Shown here one piece after another: positions 17,574-63,483 of a DNA stretch of 64,000 nucleotides. A model generated the notes under the pieces. It saw nothing but the letters and a program-made list of their open reading frames with translations. It made no database searches and was not told the DNA's origin. A program made the position numbers and the translations under genes. The stretch is from the NCBI RefSeq assembly GCF_963676685.1, contig NC_092355.1, forward strand, positions 24,552,001 through 24,616,000. Reading direction: 5' to 3'. Numbering within the stretch: the stretch's first letter is position 1; the number at the start of each line of letters is the position of its first letter. Source of the stretch: Mytilus edulis. Its lineage: Eukaryota.

Positions 17574-19522
17574 GTAAAGGCGATTTCAGATTACCCACGA
17601 CCAAAGAATATCAAGAAATTAAGACGATTGTAGGGTTCATTTAACTTGTTCAGAAAATTCATACCGAACTATAGTGCACTTGTTTTTTCCATTAACTCGA
17701 CTTTTGAAAAAAGAACAGATATTCACATGGCGGAGTGTACAGGAAACAGCATTTAACGATTTGAAACATAAATTGGTGAATTCCGACATACTTAGTTTTC
17801 TAAAGTTCGATCTGACTTTTCGCTTAAGTGTAGATACATCAGCACGAGGTATTGGATATATGTTATATCAGCTTGACCCAGATGACGAAACACAAAAACC
17901 ACGTATTATTAGGTTTGACTCTAAATCGTTGAGTCAATGGCAACAGTCTTACGGTCCAACAAAATTAGAACTTCTAGGAATGGTCGTTAGCATACTTGAG
18001 TGTATGGATTATTTGCGTTGGAATTCTTTTATAGCCGAATGTGACCACCAAGCATTGAAACCTTTGTACTAAAACAATTTAAAGGGACAATTTATTCTCG
18101 TTTGAAATCGTATACAAAAAGAAAGACGACATGCAAGTTCCCGATGCCTTATTTAGATGCGAAAATAGCAAAGCGGAAGTTGTAGAGAGCCCTGCTGAAG
18201 ATGACCCATTTTTTACGTTCGTCGAAGACGTTTGCGGTAAACTGAAATACCAAATGGTCCAAATTTTTCCGAACTGATTGCTTCAAAAGTTACCGATGTA
18301 CAAGCAGTCCATTTAACTGACGATGCATACGACGCAGATACATTGATAAGTGACCCGTATGATGCCGATACAGATGAAATTGACGATAATATCAGAAAAA
18401 ATAATCAGTGAGAAAAATGTCGACACAGCGTCGAACAATGTACAAGTCAGATACCGGAATCGTTGACAAAACTTGAACAACATCTGTTTTTGAAAATACA
18501 TCAATTTCTACCAAAAAATTAAAACAAATGCAACGTCAGGATATCACATTGACAACAAATATAGACTATCTCGAAAATGACACTTTACCCGAATCTCAAA
18601 AGGAGGCTAGGCGAGTTCTTTTAAAATCATCTGATGACGCCTTGATTGACAAAGTACTATTTCATTCTCGAATCGCTAAAGCTAAAAGAAACAAAATGAT
18701 GGAGCATTATCAGATTGTTATACCCGAGGCGTTAATTAATATTGTGCTTAAAGTTGTTCATGATTCACTCCTTGTCGGACATTGCGGGATTACAATACTT
18801 TGGACAGGGCAAAAGAACACTTTTTCTTTCCAAGAATGGGGAAAATCATTCCAGACTATGTTCAATCATGTCACCTTTGCCAAATACGCAAGGTTTCAAA
18901 TAAGAAAACAAAACAGGAAATATTGTCTTTTCCAACGCCGGCCGAACAATTTCAAGTGTTGCAGATGGCCCTATGTGGCCCTTGTCCAGTTTCTGTTAAT
19001 GGAAATACATATGTGTTTACAACGGTTAATATGTTCACTTAACTATTATTTGCATACCCTTTGCGAAATAAGAAGCCATAACCGTATGTGAGGCAATTTA
19101 CAGGATGTTTACTACTTATGGAGTTTGCCAAACTTTAATATCGAATCGCGGTAGTGAATTTATCAATAGGTGTACAGCCGAATTATGTAAATTGCTTGAA
19201 GTAACACAGGAGTTCACGCCAGCATTTGCCCATCATTGCTTAGGAGCGAGTGAACGCCAACATCCAACGTTAGCAGAACTTTTAACAACTCATGTTCTAA
19301 AAGGAAAATCATGTGAAAACGAACTACATTCCTTTACATTTTCAATGATCTCGTCTGTAAACAACAGCATTGATTTTTCTCCATTTGAAATACTCTATGG
19401 GAAACAACCAAATTTTCCGCTCATTCAATATAATAGCGCATCTTTCAAAGACATATTCGTAGATATGCGTACGTATTTTCAGGAACTCACATGTAAATTA
19501 AATACAACATGAAATAGTATCC

Positions 19523-27786: not shown

Positions 27787-28995
27787 TTACGTTAATTGTT
27801 CACTAAAATCCCACGGCTTTACTAAATCATCTGATTTGTGATTTTTTTTATGCTCAAAGCACCGGTATTCTTCAGTTAATAAATCGTCAATTGTGTTTCG
27901 TTGGATTGAAAAATCTCCATCGTAACATGTGAATGTTTTTATATAAGATATATGTAGGCTATAGCGGTTTTGTAGTGTTTCAACGACTCGAAATAGTTCT
28001 GATCCCAAATTTCCGTAAGTTTTTTTTGACATTCGTGAATGCCATACTTGAAGAGCTATTGTATTATGTCCTTTACATACTACAAGTTGTTCACAACGAG
28101 ACAAATCCAAATCAAATACACCAACCTGGCGATATAATGCATTTCGTTTGCTTCGACATTCTTTATCGATTATATAACTTACATTATACTTTTTGACGTA
28201 CCAGGCAATAATATGGTTGAAAAAGGCGGGAGGAAGAAATTTAAATTCTAAACATAACCAACTGGTTTTGTTAATTGATTGACTTCCATCCGAAAAGTGC
28301 TTCTGAACTTCAGAGAAAGAGCATGCCTTTATCATACATGGCATGTATAATGTTGTTGAATCTTTTAAGTTCACAATAATATCAAATCGTTTCATTACTT
28401 CGATTAAATGTGCTTTGTTGTTTTCAAATTTCAAATTAGGTTCTTTCCGGAACAGACTAGATATAAGCGAATCTGTTAATTGTCCGGTGTCTTTCAATTG
28501 TTGCCAATCATCTGAAACTTCTATAACATTATCAATTTTATCACTAACAAGACATCGAAAGGCCTTTATCAACCATTTCGGGTTCAGAATAACATGATCA
28601 GCTAAGTTTTCTTCATCAAAGTAAATAACTGTTCCATTGTCGTTACAGTATTTCAAACATCGTTTGACTTCATTTTCTTCGCTAATACCAATATCGTCAT
28701 GTTTTGCAATTTTTAGCAATGTTTTAGTAGATGAAATTGGTACATTGTTGTCTCTCAGCTTTAATAAAACTTGTTGAAATAATAGCCATTTTAAGGGACA
28801 GATTTTGCCCCAATCTTCCATTTCCATAGCTTGACGATAAATTTCTTTTCGAATCTCTTCAAACACAATGTCAGCATCTTCAGTATTAGAAATAAAATAA
28901 ATGTTTCTCAAATGTTTTTTCTTCTCCTGGTCTTTCAGAACTTGTCCTAAATTGTCTTTAAATTGTCTTTGTCGTTTTTTTCGCTCTGAAGGTTC
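27787..28995 (-). CDS. ROCO terminal exon: end of Roc and COR domain
   Basis: ttgaag|GAA acceptor; YFISN (G5), WGKICPLKWLLFQ, CLKYCNDNGTVIYF, VILNPKWLIKAFRCLV, MKRFDII, YMPCM are typical COR motifs; 403 codons to TAA. Confidence 0.92.
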   Translation of the reverse strand, partial: EPSERKKRQRQFKDNLGQVLKDQEKKKHLRNIYFISNTEDADIVFEEIRKEIYRQAMEMEDWGKICPLKWLLFQQVLLKLRDNNVPISSTKTLLKIAKHDDIGISEENEVKRCLKYCNDNGTVIYFDEENLADHVILNPKWLIKAFRCLVSDKIDNVIEVSDDWQQLKDTGQLTDSLISSLFRKEPNLKFENNKAHLIEVMKRFDIIVNLKDSTTLYMPCMIKACSFSEVQKHFSDGSQSINKTSWLCLEFKFLPPAFFNHIIAWYVKKYNVSYIIDKECRSKRNALYRQVGVFDLDLSRCEQLVVCKGHNTIALQVWHSRMSKKTYGNLGSELFRVVETLQNRYSLHISYIKTFTCYDGDFSIQRNTIDDLLTEEYRCFEHKKNHKSDDLVKPWDFSEQLT

Positions 28996-31900
28996 CTTCA
29001 ACACATTAAAAGAAATAACTGTTTCAACAAAGGGACACACAGATGGACAAAGAACATTAGTGAAAATAAAAAAAACAATGAAGGCCGTAGATTGACATAT
29101 AATGGTGTACCTTTTTTTAAAATTGTTATTTGGATGGAAAGTTGTTTCATTGGCACCCACACCACATCTTCCTATATCTAATGACACAAAAAAATAAGGC
29201 ATAATTGGGAGTAACAAACATACCGTTTGTAGGTAACCATTTCGAAGTAAAAAAATGAAATACAACGACTTCACCACTGGTGCCACTTCCACTCTTACTG
29301 ATTTTTTTATCGTTTTATGTTGTTTATAAAAGTATCTGTCTAATTTCAAATTATAGATTCTTATTTGTCCTTGTAGCGTTTTACTAGTTAAGGAGACTCG
29401 CGGGTATAAGATTTTCAGAAAAAAAATAAACTTTAATCTTTCATTACAAATTTCATTAATTACCTTTAGTAGTTGTTACTTTATCATATGGTACAAACAT
29501 CACTCCAAAAAATCAATTTGTGTGACTTTCAAAATATAGATATCATTGAAAAAACTCTAAATTATCTCCCTTTGGTGCAAAAATGCCATTTTTTGGCATT
29601 CAAATTGAAATATCTTTTTTAACTCATCGGTGACCAAATTTCTTTTTTGTTGTTTTCGAATAAGTTGTACATAAACTTAATAATTGTATAATAAAAGCGA
29701 TTTCTGTAATTTTGTTCTTTTTTTATTTCGATATTACCGCTTTTTCTCTTATTAGTTCAACAGAAAAAAAGGACATAAACATAAATGTATGCTTCTTTCG
29801 AAGGAAGATTGTGAGCGTAAATGAACGGTGACGTCAATTTTGTATTTCATTTTTCTATTAAGTATAAGATAAAGTTCATTTATAGAAAAATATAGAGATA
29901 TCCTATATTAATTTTTTTTTAAATAATTTAGACCCGCGAGCCCCCTTAAGTTGGAAAATAATATTGTTTATAGGAATAAACATGTGTACCTTAAAACGAT
30001 CTTCGTTTGTACATACAACAATGATTGGAGGGTCTAGTCTGCCTTTCTTTGTAGTCGACCAGTAGCAGTGAATGGCGTCAAACCAGAAACAGACATACTC
30101 TATCAATTATTTGAAAGTATAAAATGGTCAATATGAATAACACAATAAATTTACTTTAGGAACCATAAAAATGTGTGTTCAACATATTTGAAGTACATAC
30201 TTCGCAACACATGTACAACATGTCATTAACAAACCTGACAACCTAAAGCAGGATTATTCCAAACAATATCTTGAGAACAAATTTGGTTTATATGTTCATC
30301 TAAAACACAAGTCGCCGAAAAAATTACCTGAAAAAACTATGTAATATCTTTTGTGTATACATATGACATCCAAACAAATTCAATGCTCTCTTTTTCCTGC
30401 CATGAATTTAGTTTTAACTATGTTTGATATTTAACAATATAACACAACGGTAGGTTTCACAAATAGCAATGTCTATCTGACTGTTACAAATATGTGTTAC
30501 TTTATTCAGAGGGGAAAAGGTTTCAAAACTCATGTTGGTACAATATATCACGGTAGCTTAACTATTACAAGTACCAAATGTATGATAGAGGTTTTGCTAT
30601 GAGGTTTTCGCACTGTGCATACTTATTCTATCAGAACAATTAATTTGTAGTTGTAGATTTCTTTCTGTCCCGTCATCATGGAAGAATTTAGAAGCATAAC
30701 ATCTTGACGAATAAATTTTTATGTCAGTTTTTCAATTGTAGAACTTACCTGCCGAGCCTTCAAAATCTAGCCCTTGGTTTTCAACAGTGCTGAACTCTAA
30801 ACTGTCTGTGACAAGCAAATACACTGCGCATTTTGACAGGAAGACTTGGTGTGTAGCATAAAAATCTTTCTGGCCAGCAAAATCCCACAACCAGCAAAAC
30901 GCTAACATTTCATTCTGTTCCCCTGTCGTAGATTTAAGATATGATTTCATAAGTGTAGAAGTCATTTCGTTTATATGTTCATCGTTAACAGGGTCCGACA
31001 CATTTTCATTTAAGTAGTTGTTAACTGTGTGACCATTCGCCTTTTCTGATTTGACATTGTCTTTTTGGATTTGATTTAAATCAATCTCCACTGCTTCATG
31101 ATTGTCTTTTTTGTCGGGTATATCTGAATGAATATCAGGTATTCTGGAACCTATCAATAAGGTGTCATCACTTTCATTTCTAACGCTGGAAGTATCGTCT
31201 TTTAAGGTATCTTTGTATTCACTATTACTTGCACTTGTAGAAAGTCGTTTGTCTGATGCACGTCTTGATTCATCTGTTTTGGAACTTGAAGGTTCTTGAT
31301 GAATAACAGTTTCGGCTGTGGCGTTCAGGAGCTTATCTTTATACACTTGATGTATCAATCTAGTTAGATCGTCGTCTGTCTCTGTTAGCATATAAAAAAT
31401 GAGATAAATAAACAGATAACCAACAGGTTAATATACTTTATTTTGTTGACACGAAGAAGATATCCAATGCATATATTTGCTGTTTGGTTAATATTGATGT
31501 TTAGATTATATTCCGTTGTTTTTGTATAATTTGATTTTTGTTGTAACCCGTTTTCTGATTGGCGGAAGTTGTTTTGTTATCAGCTCATACACAAAAATTT
31601 GTTATGTGAACGTGACATCATTAACGTTTTTTTTCATGATTTACTGTTTTAAAATGGAATTGAAATCAAGTATCACTGATGCAGGGGCTACGTTAAATAT
31701 GAATATATGAACTAAGTACATGTATACCTCCCATAAGAATGGTGCTTGTTTAAATGTCCCTCATATTGACAAAATTCAGGTAGCAAGACAAACAGACTTA
31801 GTTGAGATCTTTTAGCTATATAAACATACATAACACACATACGACACAACTGATTCGGAGATGCAAAACTTTACGAAAAATCTGATACAGACAGTTTGGA

Positions 31901-52923: not shown

Positions 52924-52967
52924 GTGTCACTGATGAGTCTTTTGCAGACGAAACGCACGTCTGGCGT
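52924..52967 (+). ncRNA. Minimal type I hammerhead ribozyme in a retrozyme-like repeat (~52755-53010)
   Basis: gtgtca CTGATGA gtct-tttgc-agac GAAA cg-ca-cg TC tggcgt: intact core, stem I GTGTCA/TGGCGT, stem II GTCT/AGAC, very short stem III. Confidence 0.8.
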
Positions 52968-54651: not shown

Positions 54652-57600
54652 TTATCTCTTCTGAAACCACTTTCTTTCAACTACTCTGCAGCTTTCCCTT
54701 ATCTGAAATAAAATGATAATCAAATTGATATTATATCTGTAGTTTCTTGAATTTATAATGTTAAGGTTATAATCGAAACAATGCAAGTATATATTTTACA
54801 AATTGTTCTATGTACAATGTTTGCATAATAACGTTTGCATAATATAATCAACAAAAACATTTCATTGAATAAAAACCATTTAACTGTTAATTTATATTTA
54901 CCTCTGATGTCTATTTTTGCCGAAGTTACCCGAACGCACAATTAACGAAATCAACATAGAATCAAGGAGTATGTGGAAAATAAGTGAGCTGACAGACGAC
55001 GTTGTAGATCGTTGTTTGATTTTTGTATATATTTCTTCCATGTGTTTGTATATATCAAATCAACGTTGTAATTAGTTTTAAAAAGTGTTGTTGCATTATT
55101 GTTTGTCTTTGAAATAAAATTGAGAATGGAAATGGGGAATGTGTCAAAGAGACAACAACCCGACCAAATAAAAAACAACAGCAGAGGGTCACCAACAGGT
55201 CTTCAATGTAGCGAGAAATTCCCGCACCCGGAGGCGTCCTTCAGCTGGCCCCTAAACAAATATATACTAGTCCAGTGATAATGACCGCCATACTAATTTC
55301 CAAATTGTACACAAGAAACTAAAATTAAAATAATACAAGACTAACAAAGGCCAGAGGCTCCTGACTTGGGACAGGCGCAAAAATGCGGCGGGGTTAAACA
55401 TGTTTGTGAGATCTCAACCCTCCCCCTATACCTCTAACCAATGTAGAAAAGTAAACGCATAACAATACGCACATTTAAATTCAGTTCAAGAGAAGTCCGA
55501 GTCTGATGTCAGAAGATGTAACCAAAGAAAATAAACAAAATGACAATAATACATAAATAACAACAGACTACTAGCAGTTAACTGACATGCCAGCTCCAGA
55601 CTTCAATTAAACTGACTGAAAGATTATGATTTCATCATATGAACATCAGGCACAATCCTTCCCGTTAGGGGTTTAGTATCATACCATCATAACATATATG
55701 AGAAGAACATAATCCGTGTCATGCCAACAACTGTTTTTAGAATAAATGTGTTTAGTTCCGATGCAAAGACATTATCAGTGACTCAATGTTAACGCCAAGA
55801 TATGCAATCTTTAATGACTTGACAACAGTATCGTAATTATATTCCTTCTTAATAAGTCTATTCAAAGGTTTTGTAAGTTTCTGAGGTGAATACTGACACC
55901 TTTGTGCTTTGTAAAGAATATTTCCATAAAAAATTGGATGTGAAAACCTGAACGTATTAGAAGTCTGCATGTAGAGCTATATTTACGAATGATGTCTTTA
56001 TACCGATGATAAAATTTAGTAAATGTTTTGACTAGTTTGTGATATCGAAAACCCTGGTGTAATAATTTTTCAGTAATACATAAATTTCTCTCGTTAAAAT
56101 CTAAAACATTGTTACATACACGAGCGAATCGTACAAGTTGAGATATATAAACACCGTAAGATGGTGACAAGGGAACGTCACCATCTAAAAACGGATAATT
56201 AACGATAGGAAATGAAAAGTCATCCCTTTTATCATAAATTTTAGTATTCAGCTTTCCATTAGTGATATAGATATCAAGATCGAGAAAAGGGCAGTGGTCA
56301 TTGTTAGTATTAGCTTTATTTAAAGTAAGTTCAACAGGATAAATTTCATTAATATACATACTGAAGTCGTCATTATTGAGAGCCAAAATATCATCCAAAT
56401 ATCTAAAAGTATTATTAAATTTGTTTATCAGATGTTGTTTCGATGGGTCTTTGCTTATTTTTGTCATAAATTGTAACTCATAACAATACAAAAACAGGTC
56501 CGCAATAAGTGGTGCACAGTTAGTCCCCATTGGAATTCCGATAATCTGGCGATATACGGAATCAACAAAGCGAACAAAAATGTTATCTAGTAAAAATTCA
56601 AGGGCATATATAGTATCAAAGCATGTCCAATAAACTTAGTTTTTTTGTTTATTGCTACTAAAAAATGACCTAAAAGAGTTTGAACATATATATTCACATT
56701 CTGATTTTTTGAATGCCCATTTAATTAGGTGTGTGAATTTTTTCTTAATGAGAATGTGAGGCAATGTGGTATACAGGGTAGAAATATCTAAACTTTGAAC
56801 AGATTCAAAATCACCAATATAAGCATGCAATTTATCAAGTACTTCCAACGAGTTCTTGACACTCCAAAAGTAATTTATTCCACTATTTTCGAAGGCCATA
56901 TTTGAACAATTTATTATCAGGTTTTTAATTGTACCAAGTGTGCTGGTAAGAAATATAGACAATTTAGTAGTTGAACAATGGCTTGAAGACGAAATAAATC
57001 TATATTTGTAAGGGGTTTTGTGTAGCTTCGGAAGCCAATACATAGTTGGGACTTTCATTGTATTTGGCTCTGCTTGTAAAGCGGTGGCTAAAAGTTTATG
57101 TTTGTTACAGATTTCGTTTTCTGAAAATGGAGTAAGTTGGAATGTTGGTGAATTGGTGATTTCCTTTTTCAGAACCTCAATGTAAAATTTACGTCAAACA
57201 ATAATAATATTATTAGCAGCTTTATCGGCCGGGACAAAAACAAATTCCTTGGCTAGTTTATGTTTGATTCGAGAAGTAGGTTTATTGTGGTTATTGTTTA
57301 TAGTAAAATGTTCTTTAAAATGTTGAATACTTATATCAACTATCTTCATTACTGAATTAAAAAAAGAGTCCAAAGATTTTTTGTCAGCTTTTTCCCGTTT
57401 TATCCATTTCATACAGTAAGTATGGAGTGAGTCGTGGATGATATTACGACACTCATTCCAATTAATAATTGACGGGGGACGATATGTAGGTCCTTTACTG
57501 AGGAATGATTTTAACTTTCGGTCTTGAACGATGTTAAGATCTCCTGTTATAACATGGGAAATGGGTCCATAAATATATTCGGAATTACTGCAATTACATG

Positions 57601-60600
57601 AAGTAGGTGTATTTTCACTGATATTAACATCTTTACACAATTGACTACAATTTAACACAAATTTCCGGGTAGATTTCTTGTAAATATAACAAATAAGAGG
57701 TAGCTCAGTATTGTCAAAATATCCAGAAATTTGTTCTTTAACAGAATGGTCGTTAAATATACCGGCAATATTTACAAAATCAAAGCCTTTATTGACATAC
57801 TTAATTTTAATAAAATGTTTTTTATGATCTTCAGGGCGATTAATTTTGGGAAATAATTTAGAATAACAATATGCCATAATAATTTGAACAATTTCATACT
57901 TAGGACTGCTATATGAAATTGTGTTGCAATCCTCCAAAATTTTATTTAACTTATTAACCAGTAACGAACAGAGTTTTGTTAACAGATAATGTCTGCCGTT
58001 GTTTTTTGAAATAGAAATTAGGTCCGAAATATTGGTATGATTGGCCCGAAATTTTCTTTGATTGCGATTTGTTCTACGACCGTGAGAACGTTTTTTACGA
58101 ACAGTTTTAGAAACTATATCCAAAATGTTAACGGAATTGGTTCTAGATATATTACCAATTCCCATGATATTATCATTTAGACCGAGAGGGTAAACTGTCT
58201 GTAATTTTTTAATCCAATTTAATTCAATTATTTTCCGTGATCGTACAAACTTTGAATGCGATTCACCAGGCTGCTTATTTACTACTTCTAAAGGTTGAAC
58301 TGCTAAATATTTAAAAGGATGGTTGTGCTTCTTAAGGTGTTGGTAAATGATACTTTTGAATTTATTGGGTCTTTTAAAACGATACAGATGTTCTTGGGTG
58401 CGTTTAGATAAATATCGTCCAGTTTCTCCTACGTACTGAATACCACACCCCGGTTTGTTTCATGTGAGTAAATAAATAATACTGTTTGTTTTTCAAGTTA
58501 TATCAGTTTCAAAATTTAAGGAAAATGTGCGACCATTAAACGTGGACCTTACCGTATTGTTGGTGGAAAGACGGGGACATGTAAGTCATTTTTTGGCATG
58601 ACACTCATCGATAGAAGGGTAACCACGATTTTTATTGTTAAAAATGTTAGCGATGGTAGTATTTTTAGATAACCGATTTTGAAGATTGAGACGTGTAGAT
58701 ACCCTTTTAACAAGTTTAGTATTGAGTAATTTTCCATTTCTAAGCTTCATAACTGTTTTGTTAGTGAATTATATAATAAAGGAGCAAAGATTGGCGTCCA
58801 GAATATGAACCAGCATACAATAATTTAAGTTATATAATTACCCGAAAAAGATAGGGTATATCAGGGTAGGACTGATCTATTAACACTGTATTACTTCCAC
58901 GTTTGTTCATGTTTGATAATTTGTTCTTTCGTTCCAGGTTTCCGGCGCACTTACGCTGTTCAGTAGTCGAATTAGTTAGAAGAGCTCACGAGGTAAAAGT
59001 TAACGTGTACAGAAAAGCTATCTGAAAATTAGAGTACGGGAAGACAATAGCAGTACTTTTTTTAAAGATTTAGATGAGATAATGGATTTCAATTTCAAAT
59101 GATACCTGTGAACACGGTTTTAGTAGTTTGACTGTGGTGTATACCTTTACATCATGTAAGAAGTTTGATTTGTTTCGTTTGTGTGGAGTTTTCTTTAGCA
59201 AGTTTACTGTTATTAAATCCGTTCAAAGTTGAATCAATTGCTTAAAATTGAAAGTGTGAGCGCAAATCTAAATTGACAGATTGGCTAACTGCTGGTGTTT
59301 AACAACACTTTCAATTATGATGATTATGGATGTATTTTTAACATCCGGCGGGGCATTTAATATACAGACCACATTCAGGACAACAACGTGATATTTGATA
59401 TTAAATCGTATCATACTTCGTAATAGACCGAGATGCTGAGCTAGATTATAGCATGCTAGTTTATAAGGAAACAGTCCGTAGAAAGAACCCTACACGGACA
59501 TTGTATTTTGACTCCGAATTGAACATTTTTTTTTGTCTTTTTCATTCATGTTGCGGGCTTAGTAAAGGAGCAGTAAATTTTACAGTCGTTTGATTGACCC
59601 GGCGAGTTTAGGACACGGGACCTCATGCACCTAAGGCGACCACGCAACTACAATACCATGGTACCATATGTTGATCAGGAACTACCCTTTTATAGCATCG
59701 TTGTTCGCCCAAGGTTAAAGGTTTGATTCGTGTTGCTCAGTCTGTTGTTGTTTATGAAATGTTTTGTTATTGTTGACTGTATTTTTCTCGTTTTAATTTT
59801 CAGCAACGCTAATACTTGTTGTTTGTTTGTTTTCTTATACTTATATTTTTTATCGGTCCTTAGATATTTTTTCTCAATTTTTCGGTAATCCAGAATTAAA
59901 TTTAATTTTGGGTTTTGCATGTAATTATACACATGCGAGCAAATAAATAACAGATGGTACATCTGGGAAGTTCAGTTGTAAAGTCGAAGCAAAGCATATA
60001 GCCTATCTAACATGTTTCGTGATAGAGTGTTAGTAGGAACTTTTATTGTCATGTTGTTCATATTTACATTATCATATTAACGTAAGGGATTGGATTGGGT
60101 TTACAACATAGAGAATAATTGATCAAATGTACAAGAAATCGCTAGGACAAAATCATTAAAAAAGAGAAAAATTTAAAAAAAGAATAGAGTGAATCAAATT
60201 ATAAAGAATGGATAAATGCCGTGTTAAAATATAAAGAATAGAGAAAAATTAAGTGCAAAAATATAAATAATGAAATAAGGAAATATTAGTAAAACAAATA
60301 TAAATGCATAACAAATTGAGAAAAGACACCCAAAAGATTAAAAATACAAGAATGAAAGACAACCAATCCAGACTCTCTAACATACCCTAGTGATACAACG
60401 GTTGTGTATTTCAGAACTTAATAAAGGCAATGGTAGTATATACCGCTATTCAAAACTCGTAAATCTATGGACAAACAACAAAATCGGGGTAACAAACCAA
60501 AACTGCGGGAAACGCATTAAATATAAGAGAACAACGACACAACATTAAAATGTAACACACACAGCAACAGACTAAGCATTAGACAAAATCCTATGAGAAT

Positions 60601-63483
60601 AACAAATATAACATCAAAACCAAATACATGAATTTGGGATAGACAAGTATGTCTTATAGTCAGGCAATGGTAGTATATACCGCTGTTCAATATGCATACA
60701 ATAGTTTTTTATCTATCTTTAAATCTTATTAATCCACCAAGATGATACAAATTAAGGTAAAATAATAAAATCTAGAAGAATCGCATGATCTCCAAAAGGA
60801 GCGACACCGGATGCTTAGACGGGATTATAGTTTCCTGTTATTATCGCGTCAGCTGTATCATGCATTTACATTTTCGGTCAAAACATGAGCTTTAACATTA
60901 TAATCGAAACTTACAGCCTTATCAAAGCAGTACTTCAATCCTCTCTGTGTAAGTGCACTTGTTTCACAATATGGCATTCTGTGATCACTGGCAAAAGTCT
61001 CTGCCTCCGCTTTAGTTATACATGTGTCTTTACTTGAATCTCTTAAATCTGAAATATGCTCAAAATGAATGCAATCCATGTCATTTTAATTCGTTAATCT
61101 GACTCTATTATAACCCTAAATCTCTAAAATAACCAGGCTAGAAGGGGAAAACAGGAAAAAAAACTGCGGTTCAAGAAAAGCAACATAGAATATGTTAAAA
61201 AAAAGAAAAGATAGTCAATAATGATCAGACTAAAAACAAACCACATAAGTGGATAGAAATCTAACGATTGGACAACATGAAGTTAAGAAACTGGTCTGAA
61301 CACATGTGCTGTTTTAGGCTAAGATGAAATAATGCTGACTCATATTGACGGAGCTGCGTGAGGCTGAGATGATGTTATACTGACTCATTTTGAAGGTGTT
61401 GTTTAAGGCTGAGATAATGTAATGCTGACTCATATTGACGGAGCTGCGTGAGGCTGAGATGATGTAAAACTGACTCATTTTGAAGGTGCTGTTTAAGGCT
61501 GAGATGATGTAATTCTGACTCATTTTGAAGGTGCTGTTTAAGGCTGAGATGATGTAATTCTGACTCATTTTGAAGGTGCTGTTTGAGGCTAAGGTGATGT
61601 AATGCTGACTCATTTTGACGGTCGTCTCGTTTGAGGCTAAGATAAAGAAATGCTGACTAATTTAGACGGTGATGTTTGCGGCTAAGATGATGCAATGCAA
61701 ACTCATTTTGACGGTGCTGTTTGAGGCTAAGATGATGTAATACTGTCTCATTTTGACGGTGCCGTTTTAAGCTTAGATGATGTAATGCTGACTCATTTTG
61801 ACGGTGCTATTTTAGGCTAAGATGATGTAATGCTGACTCATTTTGACGGTGCTGTTTGAGACTAAAATGATGTATTGCTGACTCATTATGACGGTGCTGC
61901 TTAAGGCTAAGATGATGTAATGCTTACTTATTTTGACAGTGCTGTTTTAGGCTAAGATGAAATAATGCTGACTCATATTGACGGAGCTGCGTGAGGCTGA
62001 GATGATGTAATACTGACTCATTTTGAAGGTGCTGTTTGAGGCTGAGATGATGCAATTCTGACTCATTTTGAATGTGCTGTTTGACGGGGAGATGGTGTAA
62101 TGCTGACTCATTTTGACGGTGTCGTTTGAGGCTAAGATGAAGAAAGGCTGACTAATTTAGACGGTGATGTTTGCGGCTAAGATGATGTAAAACTGACTCA
62201 TTTTGACAGTGCTGTTTGAGGCTAACATGATGTAATGCTGACTCATTTTGACGGTGCTGTTTTAAGCTTAGATGATGTAATGCTGACTCATTTTGACGGT
62301 GCTATTTTAGGCTAAGATGATGTAATGCTGACTCATTTTGACGGTGCTGTTTGAGACTAAAATGATGTATTGCTGACTCATTATGACGGTGCTGCTTAAG
62401 GCTAAGATGATGTAATGCTTACTTATTTTGACAGTGCTGTTTTAGGCTAAGATGAAATAATGCTGACTCATATTGACGGAGCTGCGTGAGGCTGAGATGA
62501 TGTAATACTGACTCATTTTGAAGGTGCTGTTTGAGGCTGAGATGATGCAATTCTGACTCATTTTGAATGTGCTGTTTGACGGGGAGATGGTGTAATGCTG
62601 ACTCATTTTGACGGTGTCGTTTGAGGCTAAGATGAAGAAAGGCTGACTAATTTAGACGGTGATGTTTGCGGCTAAGATGATGTAAAACTGACTCATTTTG
62701 ACAGTGCTGTTTGAGGCTAACATGATGTAATGCTGACTCATTTTGACGGTGCTGTTTGAGGCTAAGATGATGTATTACTGACTCATTTTGACGGTGCTAT
62801 TTGAGGCTTAGATGATTTAATGGTGACTCATTTTGACGGTGCTGTTTTTGGTTAAGATGATGTATTGCTGACTCATTTTGACGGTGCTGATTTAGGCTAA
62901 GATGATGTAATGCTGACTCATTTTGACGGTGCTGTTTTAGGCTAAGATGATGTAATGCTGACTCATTTTGACGGTGCTGTTTGAGGCGAAGATGATGTAA
63001 TGCTGACTCGTTTTGGCGGTGCTGTTTAAGGCTTAGATGATGTATTGCTGACTCATTTTGACGGAATTGAGCAGGTATTAATCAATGGAACACACGAGAC
63101 ATCTATTTGCAAAGTATTGGTATAGTATAGAATCTGAGTTTTTTATCATCATTTTAATTGAACTACGAGTATATGTCATTCGTAAACAAATACTGGTGCC
63201 AATCACTCGTTGTGAATCTGAGGTCCGTACGAATTCCTTAATTAAAAGAAAAAGCATAAACTCTTTTACATTTAATATTGCCGGTAGAATAGAGGTGTTC
63301 TGATAAATTATTACCTGTTTTACAACCAACTAACACTTTAGCTACATTTGGTAGATGGTGCTTTATTTCCAGTATCCATTTTTTTTCTATATTTTCCAAG
63401 GATGATCTGTCGTTGATAGAGAAACACAGTAGCACGACATCTGTCTGTGGATACGACAAAGGTCTTAATCTATCATAATCCTC
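54652..63483 (-). CDS. Rho/Rac-family small GTPase, 3' exons (N-terminus lies beyond the window)
   Basis: Exon 63483-63315 [22 protein letters not shown]...[12 protein letters not shown]...LVGCKT; exon 61048-60915 DLR...[19 protein letters not shown]; tentative last exon 54702-54652 [16 protein letters not shown] followed by AATAAA. Confidence 0.85.
55635..55701 (-). promoter_or_regulatory. SECIS element (type II) in the Naiad 3' UTR
   Basis: tcatatatgtt ATGAT ggtatgatact AAA ccc-ctaac-ggg a aggattgtgcc TGAT gttcatatga: AUGA/UGA core, 11-bp helix II, apical AAA plus ministem, helix I TCATAT/ATATGA. Confidence 0.85.
55752..58750 (-). pseudogene. Naiad EN-RT polyprotein (~1000 codons), putative selenoprotein with 4 Sec codons; this copy has one TAA (56636-56638) and one frameshift (~55950)
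   Basis: One frame runs from ATG 58750 (MKLRNGK) through ORFs 57194-58165, 56636-57058 and 55862-56530; TGA at codons 55, 86, 97 and 519. Confidence 0.88.
61306..63064. repeat. 45-bp satellite, ~39 copies, with ~495-bp (11-mer) higher-order repeat; intronic in the Rho gene
   Basis: Unit gtgctgtttgaggctaagatgatgtaatgctgactcattttgacg; variant units recur 495 bp apart (e.g. ggggagatgg at ~62086 and ~62581). Confidence 0.97.

Follow-up and report, generated by a model that had tools for sequence, protein, structure and literature searches.

A high-copy Naiad retrotransposon family of the mussel Mytilus with four in-frame UGA codons predicted to encode selenocysteine

Naiads, as defined by Craig et al. 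(2021), are Penelope-like retrotransposons in which a GIY-YIG endonuclease is N-terminal and the reverse transcriptase (RT) is C-terminal, and four of their families, two from clams and two from spiders, were reported to code for selenocysteine (Sec), each with three or four UGA codons and a selenocysteine insertion sequence (SECIS) (PMC8557442). In the clam families (Naiad_Scon of Sinonovacula constricta and Naiad_Mmer of Mercenaria mercenaria), UGA is found in the CCHH motif in place of its first Cys, at the Cys that precedes GIY-YIG, and at a Cys located eight residues past DKA (PMC8557442). The SECIS hairpins of that paper are of type I and, in three of the four families, follow the stop codon at a distance of 1-21 nt, and its authors judged the spider and clam origins of Sec to be independent (PMC8557442). 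A Mytilus Naiad was listed with a 5-residue insert in the knuckle, and no Sec was reported from mussels (PMC8557442). Here we describe a Naiad copy in a stretch of Mytilus edulis DNA of 64,000 nucleotides (RefSeq assembly GCF_963676685.1, contig NC_092355.1, positions 24,552,001 to 24,616,000), which we call the window and number from its first letter.

The copy at this locus is dead and 5'-truncated, and it belongs to a very young Naiad family that is present in Mytilus in high copy number. Family members that have escaped interruption have a single open reading frame (ORF) with four UGA codons at conserved Cys positions and a SECIS behind it, and we hold it very probable that these UGAs are decoded as Sec. 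Both the insertion of Sec and any benefit that the element draws from it are predictions made from DNA sequence. An earlier note on the window had assigned the element to the Naiad group of Penelope-like elements and cited Craig et al., correctly in both respects (PMC8557442). It also proposed that the family recodes UGA as Sec in the zinc-binding region of the endonuclease and in the region preceding the RT, a proposal that gains support from the SECIS, from the pattern of selection on the ORF and from the TGA codons of relatives.

Four in-frame TGA codons at conserved cysteine positions

A single minus-strand frame opens at ATG 58750 and contains four TGA codons, and translation places them at exactly the coordinates and in exactly the contexts that the earlier note had given. 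The features of this frame are as follows.

55752..58750, minus strand: single ORF for endonuclease and RT, one frame from ATG 58750, broken in this copy by a private TAA and a private 1-nt deletion
58586..58588, minus strand: TGA 1, codon 55, at the second Cys of a C-x4-C-xx-C knuckle (motif 58603-58577), in the context ECHAKK-stop-LTC
58493..58495, minus strand: TGA 2, codon 86, at the first Cys of the endonuclease CCHH motif, in the context DIT-stop-KT; a position named in PMC8557442
58460..58462, minus strand: TGA 3, codon 97, at the Cys just before the GIY-YIG core (58480-58424)
57194..57196, minus strand: TGA 4, codon 519 in the window copy and 522 in intact copies, at the Cys eight residues after the DKA motif (57226-57194)
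57259..57260, minus strand: private in-frame 9-nt deletion
56636..56638, minus strand: private nonsense TAA, which is TAT in 29/29 other copies
55945..55946, minus strand: private 1-nt deletion causing a frameshift, absent in 29/29 other copies
55752..55754, minus strand: TAA that ends the ORF in uninterrupted copies

Up to the loss of frame near 55946, the TAA at 56638-56636 is the only stop other than TGA in the window copy. This TAA and the frameshift had been taken to be peculiar to the copy, as the other copies bear out. In uninterrupted copies the ORF comprises 1002 codons and ends at a TAA. The four TGAs are the sole internal stops in five of the 12 other copies that retain a start codon, and all of these run to the same TAA over 1002 codons. 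A mechanical list of ORFs cuts the element into pieces of 54, 323, 140 and 222 residues.

The TGA codons are fixed in the family. For comparison we fetched 29 other genomic copies, the best-scoring ones, and compared them site by site with a natural uninterrupted copy as the frame reference. The earlier note had asked whether other copies carry TGC, TGT or TGG at the four sites; they carry TGA, in 17/17, 18/18, 19/19 and 29/29 of the copies that cover sites 1, 2, 3 and 4, respectively. In a second sample of 30 loci with a 5' end, which overlaps the first in five loci and includes the window copy itself as one of them, each of the three 5' sites is TGA in 30/30. A protein-level search of the genome gave the same picture at larger scale. 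The three TGAs are present in 132/132 scored N-terminal matches (with an additional TGA in one match and an additional TAG in another), and 74/74 C-terminal matches have one TGA (two in one match) and no other stop. In 39 of these 74, the frame is open for 905 codons, which is the distance from TGA 3 to the terminal TAA.

The positions of these codons were evaluated against 45 homologues of at least 800 residues. To obtain them, the RT piece of an uninterrupted natural copy was searched against 1.84 billion representative proteins, and the homologues were then aligned to the ORF read through with X at its stops. Homologues have Cys at sites 1 to 4 in 23/25, 29/30, 31/32 and 43/44 cases, in agreement with the claim that the TGAs lie on Cys sites. 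Because only 9 of the 1002 codon positions are conserved-Cys columns (50, 55, 58, 86, 97, 102, 385, 387 and 522), this placement is far beyond chance: four random codons would all land on the nine columns with a probability of ~3e-9, or ~0.005 if only the ORF's 29 Cys or TGA codons are allowed. Stop codons gained by individual copies look different. There are 12 of them (6 TAA, 5 TAG and 1 TGA); no stop gain is shared between copies, and all fall outside Cys codons. The argument of the earlier note that random decay is unlikely to give the observed pattern is borne out by both comparisons.

The ORF has also been under purifying selection. Variable sites of the 30-copy alignment were split according to whether the minor allele is private to one copy (a singleton) or shared; private variants are mostly decay after insertion, and shared variants arose in replicating lineages. 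The ratio of nonsynonymous to synonymous variants is 228:103 for private variants, which include all 12 stop gains, versus 16:26 for shared variants, which include none (Fisher p = 2e-4). The same shift is found between TGA 3 and TGA 4 (117:46 versus 8:10, p = 0.03) and downstream of TGA 4 (100:48 versus 6:13, p = 0.004). The ORF past all four UGAs was therefore under purifying selection while the family multiplied, and this is the part of the ORF whose translation needs every one of the four UGAs to be decoded.

The SECIS hairpin and its distribution among relatives

A SECIS lies in the 3' untranslated region (UTR) of the element.

55636..55700, minus strand: SECIS (Rfam SECIS_1, E 0.0018, 32.3 bits), which starts 51 nt past the stop codon TAA
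55113..55635, minus strand: remaining 3' UTR, which extends to the element's 3' end (...CTCAATTTTAT)

The match is unique within the window and is also found in other copies. In its predicted fold, helix I and the AUGA/GA core are accompanied by a helix II of 10 bp, an AAA that is left unpaired and a mini-stem of 3 bp, the arrangement of form 2. The AUGA, AAA and GA elements are invariant in 30/30 copies, and four copies have single substitutions elsewhere in the hairpin. Five tRNA-Sec genes are present in the host genome, with scores of 77-80 bits where the cut-off is 47; four lie on one chromosome within 560 kb (C7:74815896-75374462) and one is at C1:49149863. In addition, an array of ~40 units with a spacing of ~895 nt at C10:14.40-14.44 Mb scores 45.9 bits, just below this cut-off, and six more such units are located on C945.

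If the hairpin functions as a SECIS, then SECISBP2 would bind it in the 3' UTR and recruit eEFSec with Sec-tRNA, and each UGA would be read as Sec. Because each UGA would be decoded by this machinery, the full-length endonuclease-RT of 1002 residues could be made only when all four recoding events succeed. Failure at UGA 1-3 would release peptides of 54-96 residues, and failure at UGA 4 would yield an endonuclease-linker protein of 521 residues without the RT. That Sec in this way ties mobility to selenium supply is speculation.

Relatives of the element carry the same kinds of interruption. Public ORFs at 40-99% identity include 52 that terminate exactly one residue ahead of site 522. Eight public ORFs stop immediately before site 385, where the CxC motif has its first Cys, and ORFs that were called with the code in which TGA is Trp have W at sites 55, 86, 97, 385 and 522. 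A scan of metagenomes supplied DNA for 80 relatives, and patterns are given over these five sites with U for TGA and C for TGT or TGC. The frames extend over ~600 to 1000 aligned codons without TAA or TAG and have TGA at those sites, and the TGA-bearing relatives, which come from marine metagenomes, are 42-99% identical in protein sequence and have one to five TGAs each. Three loci that belong to the Mytilus element's own family (94-99% identity) read UUUCU. Four loci at 47-63% identity read UUUUU, six read CUUUU, two read CUUCU, which is the clam pattern of Craig et al., one reads CCUCU, one reads CCCCU, and sixteen loci at 31-40% identity read CCCCC. A scan of viral contigs gave no relatives.

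Several of these loci deserve separate mention. Loci L064, L065, L071 and L079 have five in-frame TGAs, the fifth falling on the leading Cys of the CxC motif in the linker. At 80% and 59% identity, two closer relatives have TGA at 385 and Cys at 522. The first of them, L100, combines TGT at the position eight residues after DKA with a TGA at the first Cys of CxC and, 51 nt past the stop, a SECIS, and the proteins P0209, P0210 and P0223, which together with L100 are the closest non-identical relatives, also have Cys at this position. L100 suggests a reversal from Sec to Cys at one site within a Sec clade. Extra in-frame TGAs that are off the conserved-Cys columns, in frames that are otherwise open, occur in L070 and L108 (query position 922), L069 (819) and L087 (312); these could be further Sec sites or recent nonsense mutations.

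The hairpin follows the TGA codons through this set. The Rfam SECIS model matches 9/15 TGA-bearing loci versus 0/16 Cys-only loci. In a MAFFT alignment of seven hairpins from relatives, ATGA, AAA and GA are invariant and 12/18 pairs have compensatory changes; 92% of the cells are paired, versus 34-47% when the partners are slid, and 0/500 shuffles reach the observed score. A model of our own (R1), which was built from the seven aligned hairpins selected by Rfam, scores the SECIS of the window at 73.2 bits and finds a SECIS on the coding strand in 22/30 TGA-bearing loci that have 3' sequence, versus 0/23 Cys-only loci (p = 1.4e-8), mostly at the stop codon or ~50 nt after it.

Several points weigh against decoding of the UGAs as Sec, or against the breadth of the evidence for it. 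The Rfam score of the window SECIS is under the gathering score of 35 bits. Eight of the 30 TGA-bearing relatives with 3' sequence have no SECIS at E <= 1e-3, and a SECIS-like hairpin was found by hand in two of these eight. Because the rows used to train R1 had been chosen beforehand by the Rfam SECIS model, the pairing within them is partly a matter of construction, and several of the metagenome loci are near-duplicates. The sampled genomic copies are the best-scoring ones, so older subfamilies lie outside the survey. Finally, the Pfam GIY-YIG and RT domains have no match in this protein itself, and for this reason its domain identity rests on motifs and on homologues; the latter match PF01541, and RVT_1 (PF00078) is found in 20/30 of them.

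The first two of these points would suit an alternative in which the UGAs are read through without Sec, by a near-cognate Cys- or Trp-tRNA or by a suppressor tRNA, with the hairpin irrelevant or serving some other role. Near-cognate readthrough of UGA is established. It would not account for a covarying SECIS with invariant AUGA, AAA and GA that sits at or just after the stop in most TGA-bearing relatives and in none of the Cys-only ones, nor for the restriction of the fixed TGAs to Cys columns, which is the signature of Cys/Sec exchange. Moreover, four or five events of low efficiency in series would leave hardly any full-length protein, which is at odds with the thousands of young copies of the family. 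We therefore consider simple readthrough improbable.

A second alternative, which we rate lower still, is that the family is non-autonomous, with TGAs that are the nonsense mutations of a dead master element and copies that a Cys-coding Naiad of the host genome makes in trans. Such derivatives of retrotransposons are common, and the genome yields 46370 first-look candidates for RTs of Penelope-like type, with no search aimed at Cys-coding Naiads. Against it stand the signature of purifying selection in shared variants, which extends past the last TGA, the lack of any other fixed stop, and the recurrence of the same TGA positions in relatives at 42-63% identity whose frames are otherwise open. 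The nearest relatives with Cys at 522 (P0210 type) match the genome no better than the Mytilus family does (76%). The P0001, P0197 and P0210 families were not found in the Mytilus genome by searches that were not aimed at Cys-coding Naiads, and their best matches there are the element's own family, at 55-56% and 76%. The least probable alternative is that the UGAs are true terminators for the control of expression, with the endonuclease-linker and the RT made separately by termination and reinitiation, as the separate ORFs of ~326-424 and ~435-480 residues predicted by gene callers and an ATG within 27 codons after TGA 4 might suggest; it leaves unexplained that every stop is a TGA at a conserved Cys codon and that a SECIS invariably goes with them, and TGAs 1-3 cut the zinc-knuckle and GIY-YIG motifs into intervening pieces of 30 and 10 residues that could not work alone.

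With the UGAs taken as Sec codons, the distribution of patterns also bears on their origin. An unrooted tree was built from the linker region with 89 rows and 279 columns, site 522 left out; its two classes come from differently biased searches, and it does not include the clam and spider Naiad sequences. Every one of the 39 rows that have a stop or W at 522 falls to the same side of one branch, which has 99% support in the Shimodaira-Hasegawa-like approximate likelihood ratio test (SH-aLRT). A shorter region, with few columns and weak resolution, places four Cys-at-522 forms inside the stop/W group, for at least four changes of state. Together, these trees fit a single old origin with later switches between Sec and Cys. 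Over sites 55, 86, 97, 385 and 522, the patterns form a nested series from CCCCU through CCUCU and CUUCU to UUUCU or CUUUU and finally UUUUU. One scenario, on which we are evenly divided, is that the Mytilus family is a tip of a single large and old clade of Sec-coding Naiads that extends across marine invertebrates. After such a clade gained a SECIS, its zinc-finger-like Cys residues would have been replaced stepwise by Sec, with occasional reversions to Cys, and thousands of functional SECIS hairpins would have been scattered through mussel genomes as a by-product. If this is true, 5'-truncated copies could hand a SECIS to host 3' UTRs there.

Anatomy of the copy, its family and its surroundings

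The boundaries of the copy and the remaining motifs of its ORF are listed here.

55113..58837, minus strand: Naiad copy, delimited by BLAST boundaries against 29 other copies, upstream alignment and tandem spacing
58046..58096, minus strand: KR-rich stretch of the Naiad linker
57590..57598, minus strand: CxC motif (Cys385 and Cys387), C385-N-C387; both are Cys codons here, and the first is TGA in many relatives
57482..57496, minus strand: GxKF/Y motif, KGPKY in 28/30 copies and KGPTY in the window copy (private K-to-T)
56210..56794, minus strand: RT core, with motifs at about codons 650-790
56794-56756, minus strand: RT motif SLDISTLY
56536-56492, minus strand: further RT core motif between SLDISTLY and RYLDDIL
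56404-56384, minus strand: RT motif RYLDDIL
56290-56270, minus strand: RT motif PFLDLDI
56236-56210, minus strand: RT motif YDKRDDFSF

The GIY-YIG core spans codons 91-110 and is N-terminal to the RT, which is the permuted order within a single ORF. The knuckle C50-x4-U55-xx-C58 is present upstream of it, and the CCHH motif was scored on its conserved Cys columns (86, 97 and 102). Pfam and NCBIfam searches with the ORF pieces gave no significant family, nor did the RT piece give anything significant when solved structures were searched by sequence or by profile. In its domain order, its knuckle, its linker with KR, CxC and GxKF/Y motifs, its pseudo-long terminal repeat (pseudo-LTR) arrangement and 5' truncation, and its lack of a hammerhead, the element is a Naiad. 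A search for ribozymes with Rfam, which included the canonical hammerhead, found none in two full-length loci at E <= 1 or in the window copy at E <= 10.

Full-length copies measure ~3.96 kb. The window copy is short by ~230 nt at its 5' end, and it is recognised as 5'-truncated because other copies extend that much farther upstream. This loss, the private 9-nt deletion and the private K-to-T change in the GxKF/Y motif go beyond the lesions that the earlier note had listed. A partial copy adjoins the 5' end of several full-length copies in a pseudo-LTR arrangement, which is typical of Penelope-like elements, and head-to-tail arrays with a spacing of 4031 nt occur elsewhere in the genome; the window copy has no upstream partial copy. 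TA repeats adjoin the flanks of only 2 or 3 of 30 copies, and a preference for (TA)n targets is thus not evident from this count, which was taken without a background rate.

A DNA search of the host genome (1.37 Gb, 14 large contigs) returned 4068 first-look candidates; 40 of them were scored, and these show 97-98% identity and 5' ends that are graded. The mean identity among the other copies, each against each, is 98.9%, and private substitutions amount to 0.97% in the window copy versus 0.1-0.8% in the remaining copies. A DNA search with the SECIS-bearing 3' end gave 212 candidates, a figure that is unreliable as a copy number because the search skips very common words.

Other features of the window and of related gene models were noted in passing. 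An Rfam Hammerhead_1 match (27.6 bits, gathering score 34, E 0.014) at 52924-52967 on the plus strand is 2.1 kb past the 3' end of the Naiad and on the opposite strand from it, and it may belong to a canonical Penelope-like element or a retrozyme. A 45-nt unit is repeated in tandem in at least 26 copies, 70-100% alike, at 61216-62500. Long ORFs of the Roc-COR (ROCO) type at 27787-29349 and 30732-31391, both on the minus strand, are 91-93% identical to proteins of M. galloprovincialis and M. edulis, which places the host in the edulis complex of Mytilus, and three ORFs at 17674-19512 on the plus strand resemble the RT/RNase H and integrase fragments of an LTR retroelement. In an NCBI gene model of Mytilus edulis for a sulfotransferase 1A1-like protein (P0221), a stretch of 55 residues is 84% identical to the endonuclease part of the element; this is probably a fragment of a transposable element that was annotated as an exon.

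Comparison with described selenocysteine-coding systems

To our knowledge, no mobile elements other than selenoprotein-coding transposons need the recoding of a stop codon to replicate. The 2021 paper inferred such transposons from four consensus sequences (PMC8557442). The Mytilus family would add a new host lineage, the mussels, whose Naiads had been thought to code for Cys, and the literature that we searched contains no report of Sec-coding Naiads in Mytilus. It also adds two kinds of evidence: the population-type evidence for selection on an ORF across its UGAs, and DNA from relatives in which a covarying SECIS is present only where UGA codons are. Two questions become testable as a result. 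One is why Sec would replace zinc-finger-like Cys residues in a nuclease and a polymerase, and the other is whether the SECIS copies, dispersed by the thousand, give rise to new host selenoproteins or burden the machinery for Sec. There is a practical consequence as well, in that annotation pipelines fragment such elements and label them dead.

The comparison with the clam and spider families was made from the descriptions in the paper that reported them rather than by sequence alignment. Clam Sec Naiads resemble the Mytilus family in the order of GIY-YIG, CxC linker and RT, in the single ORF, in three common UGA sites, in their abundance in bivalves and in having a SECIS soon after a UAA or UAG stop. 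They differ in the fourth UGA, which is at the second knuckle Cys in the Mytilus family, whereas the clam knuckle has no UGA and Naiad_Scon has its fourth UGA in RT6(D). The Mytilus SECIS has a form 2 mini-stem and is located 51 nt after the stop, in contrast to the type I hairpins of the paper's families, and the 5-residue knuckle insert of the paper's mussel Naiads is absent. Spider Sec Naiads (Naiad_Sdum and Naiad_Smim) are similar in having UGA within the CX2-5CxxC knuckle, before GIY-YIG and after DKA, with three or four Sec codons and a SECIS. However, they recode the first knuckle Cys, alone or along with the second, whereas the Mytilus family recodes only the second, and they keep Cys at the first CCHH position, where the Mytilus family has UGA.

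Cys-coding Naiads (for example, loci L085-L095 and L113-L119; proteins P0003 and P0201-P0207) share the domain order and motifs of the Mytilus family at 31-44% identity and have Cys at all nine conserved columns, but they have no in-frame TGA and no SECIS in any of the 23 loci scored with R1. Among host genes, bivalve selenoprotein P is a multi-Sec protein with processive UGA recoding (Baclaocos et al. 2019, as cited in PMC8557442). As far as that citation describes it, this protein resembles the element in that bivalve ribosomes decode many UGAs in one mRNA, and it differs in that it serves selenium transport in the host, is not mobile and has its Sec residues outside any endonuclease or RT. 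The UGA at the first Cys of the CxC motif in relatives would be a fifth Sec site, one that is not described in the 2021 paper. On the sequence evidence, the Mytilus family is best described as a new predicted Sec-coding Naiad with a new combination of Sec sites, of the kind known from clams and spiders.

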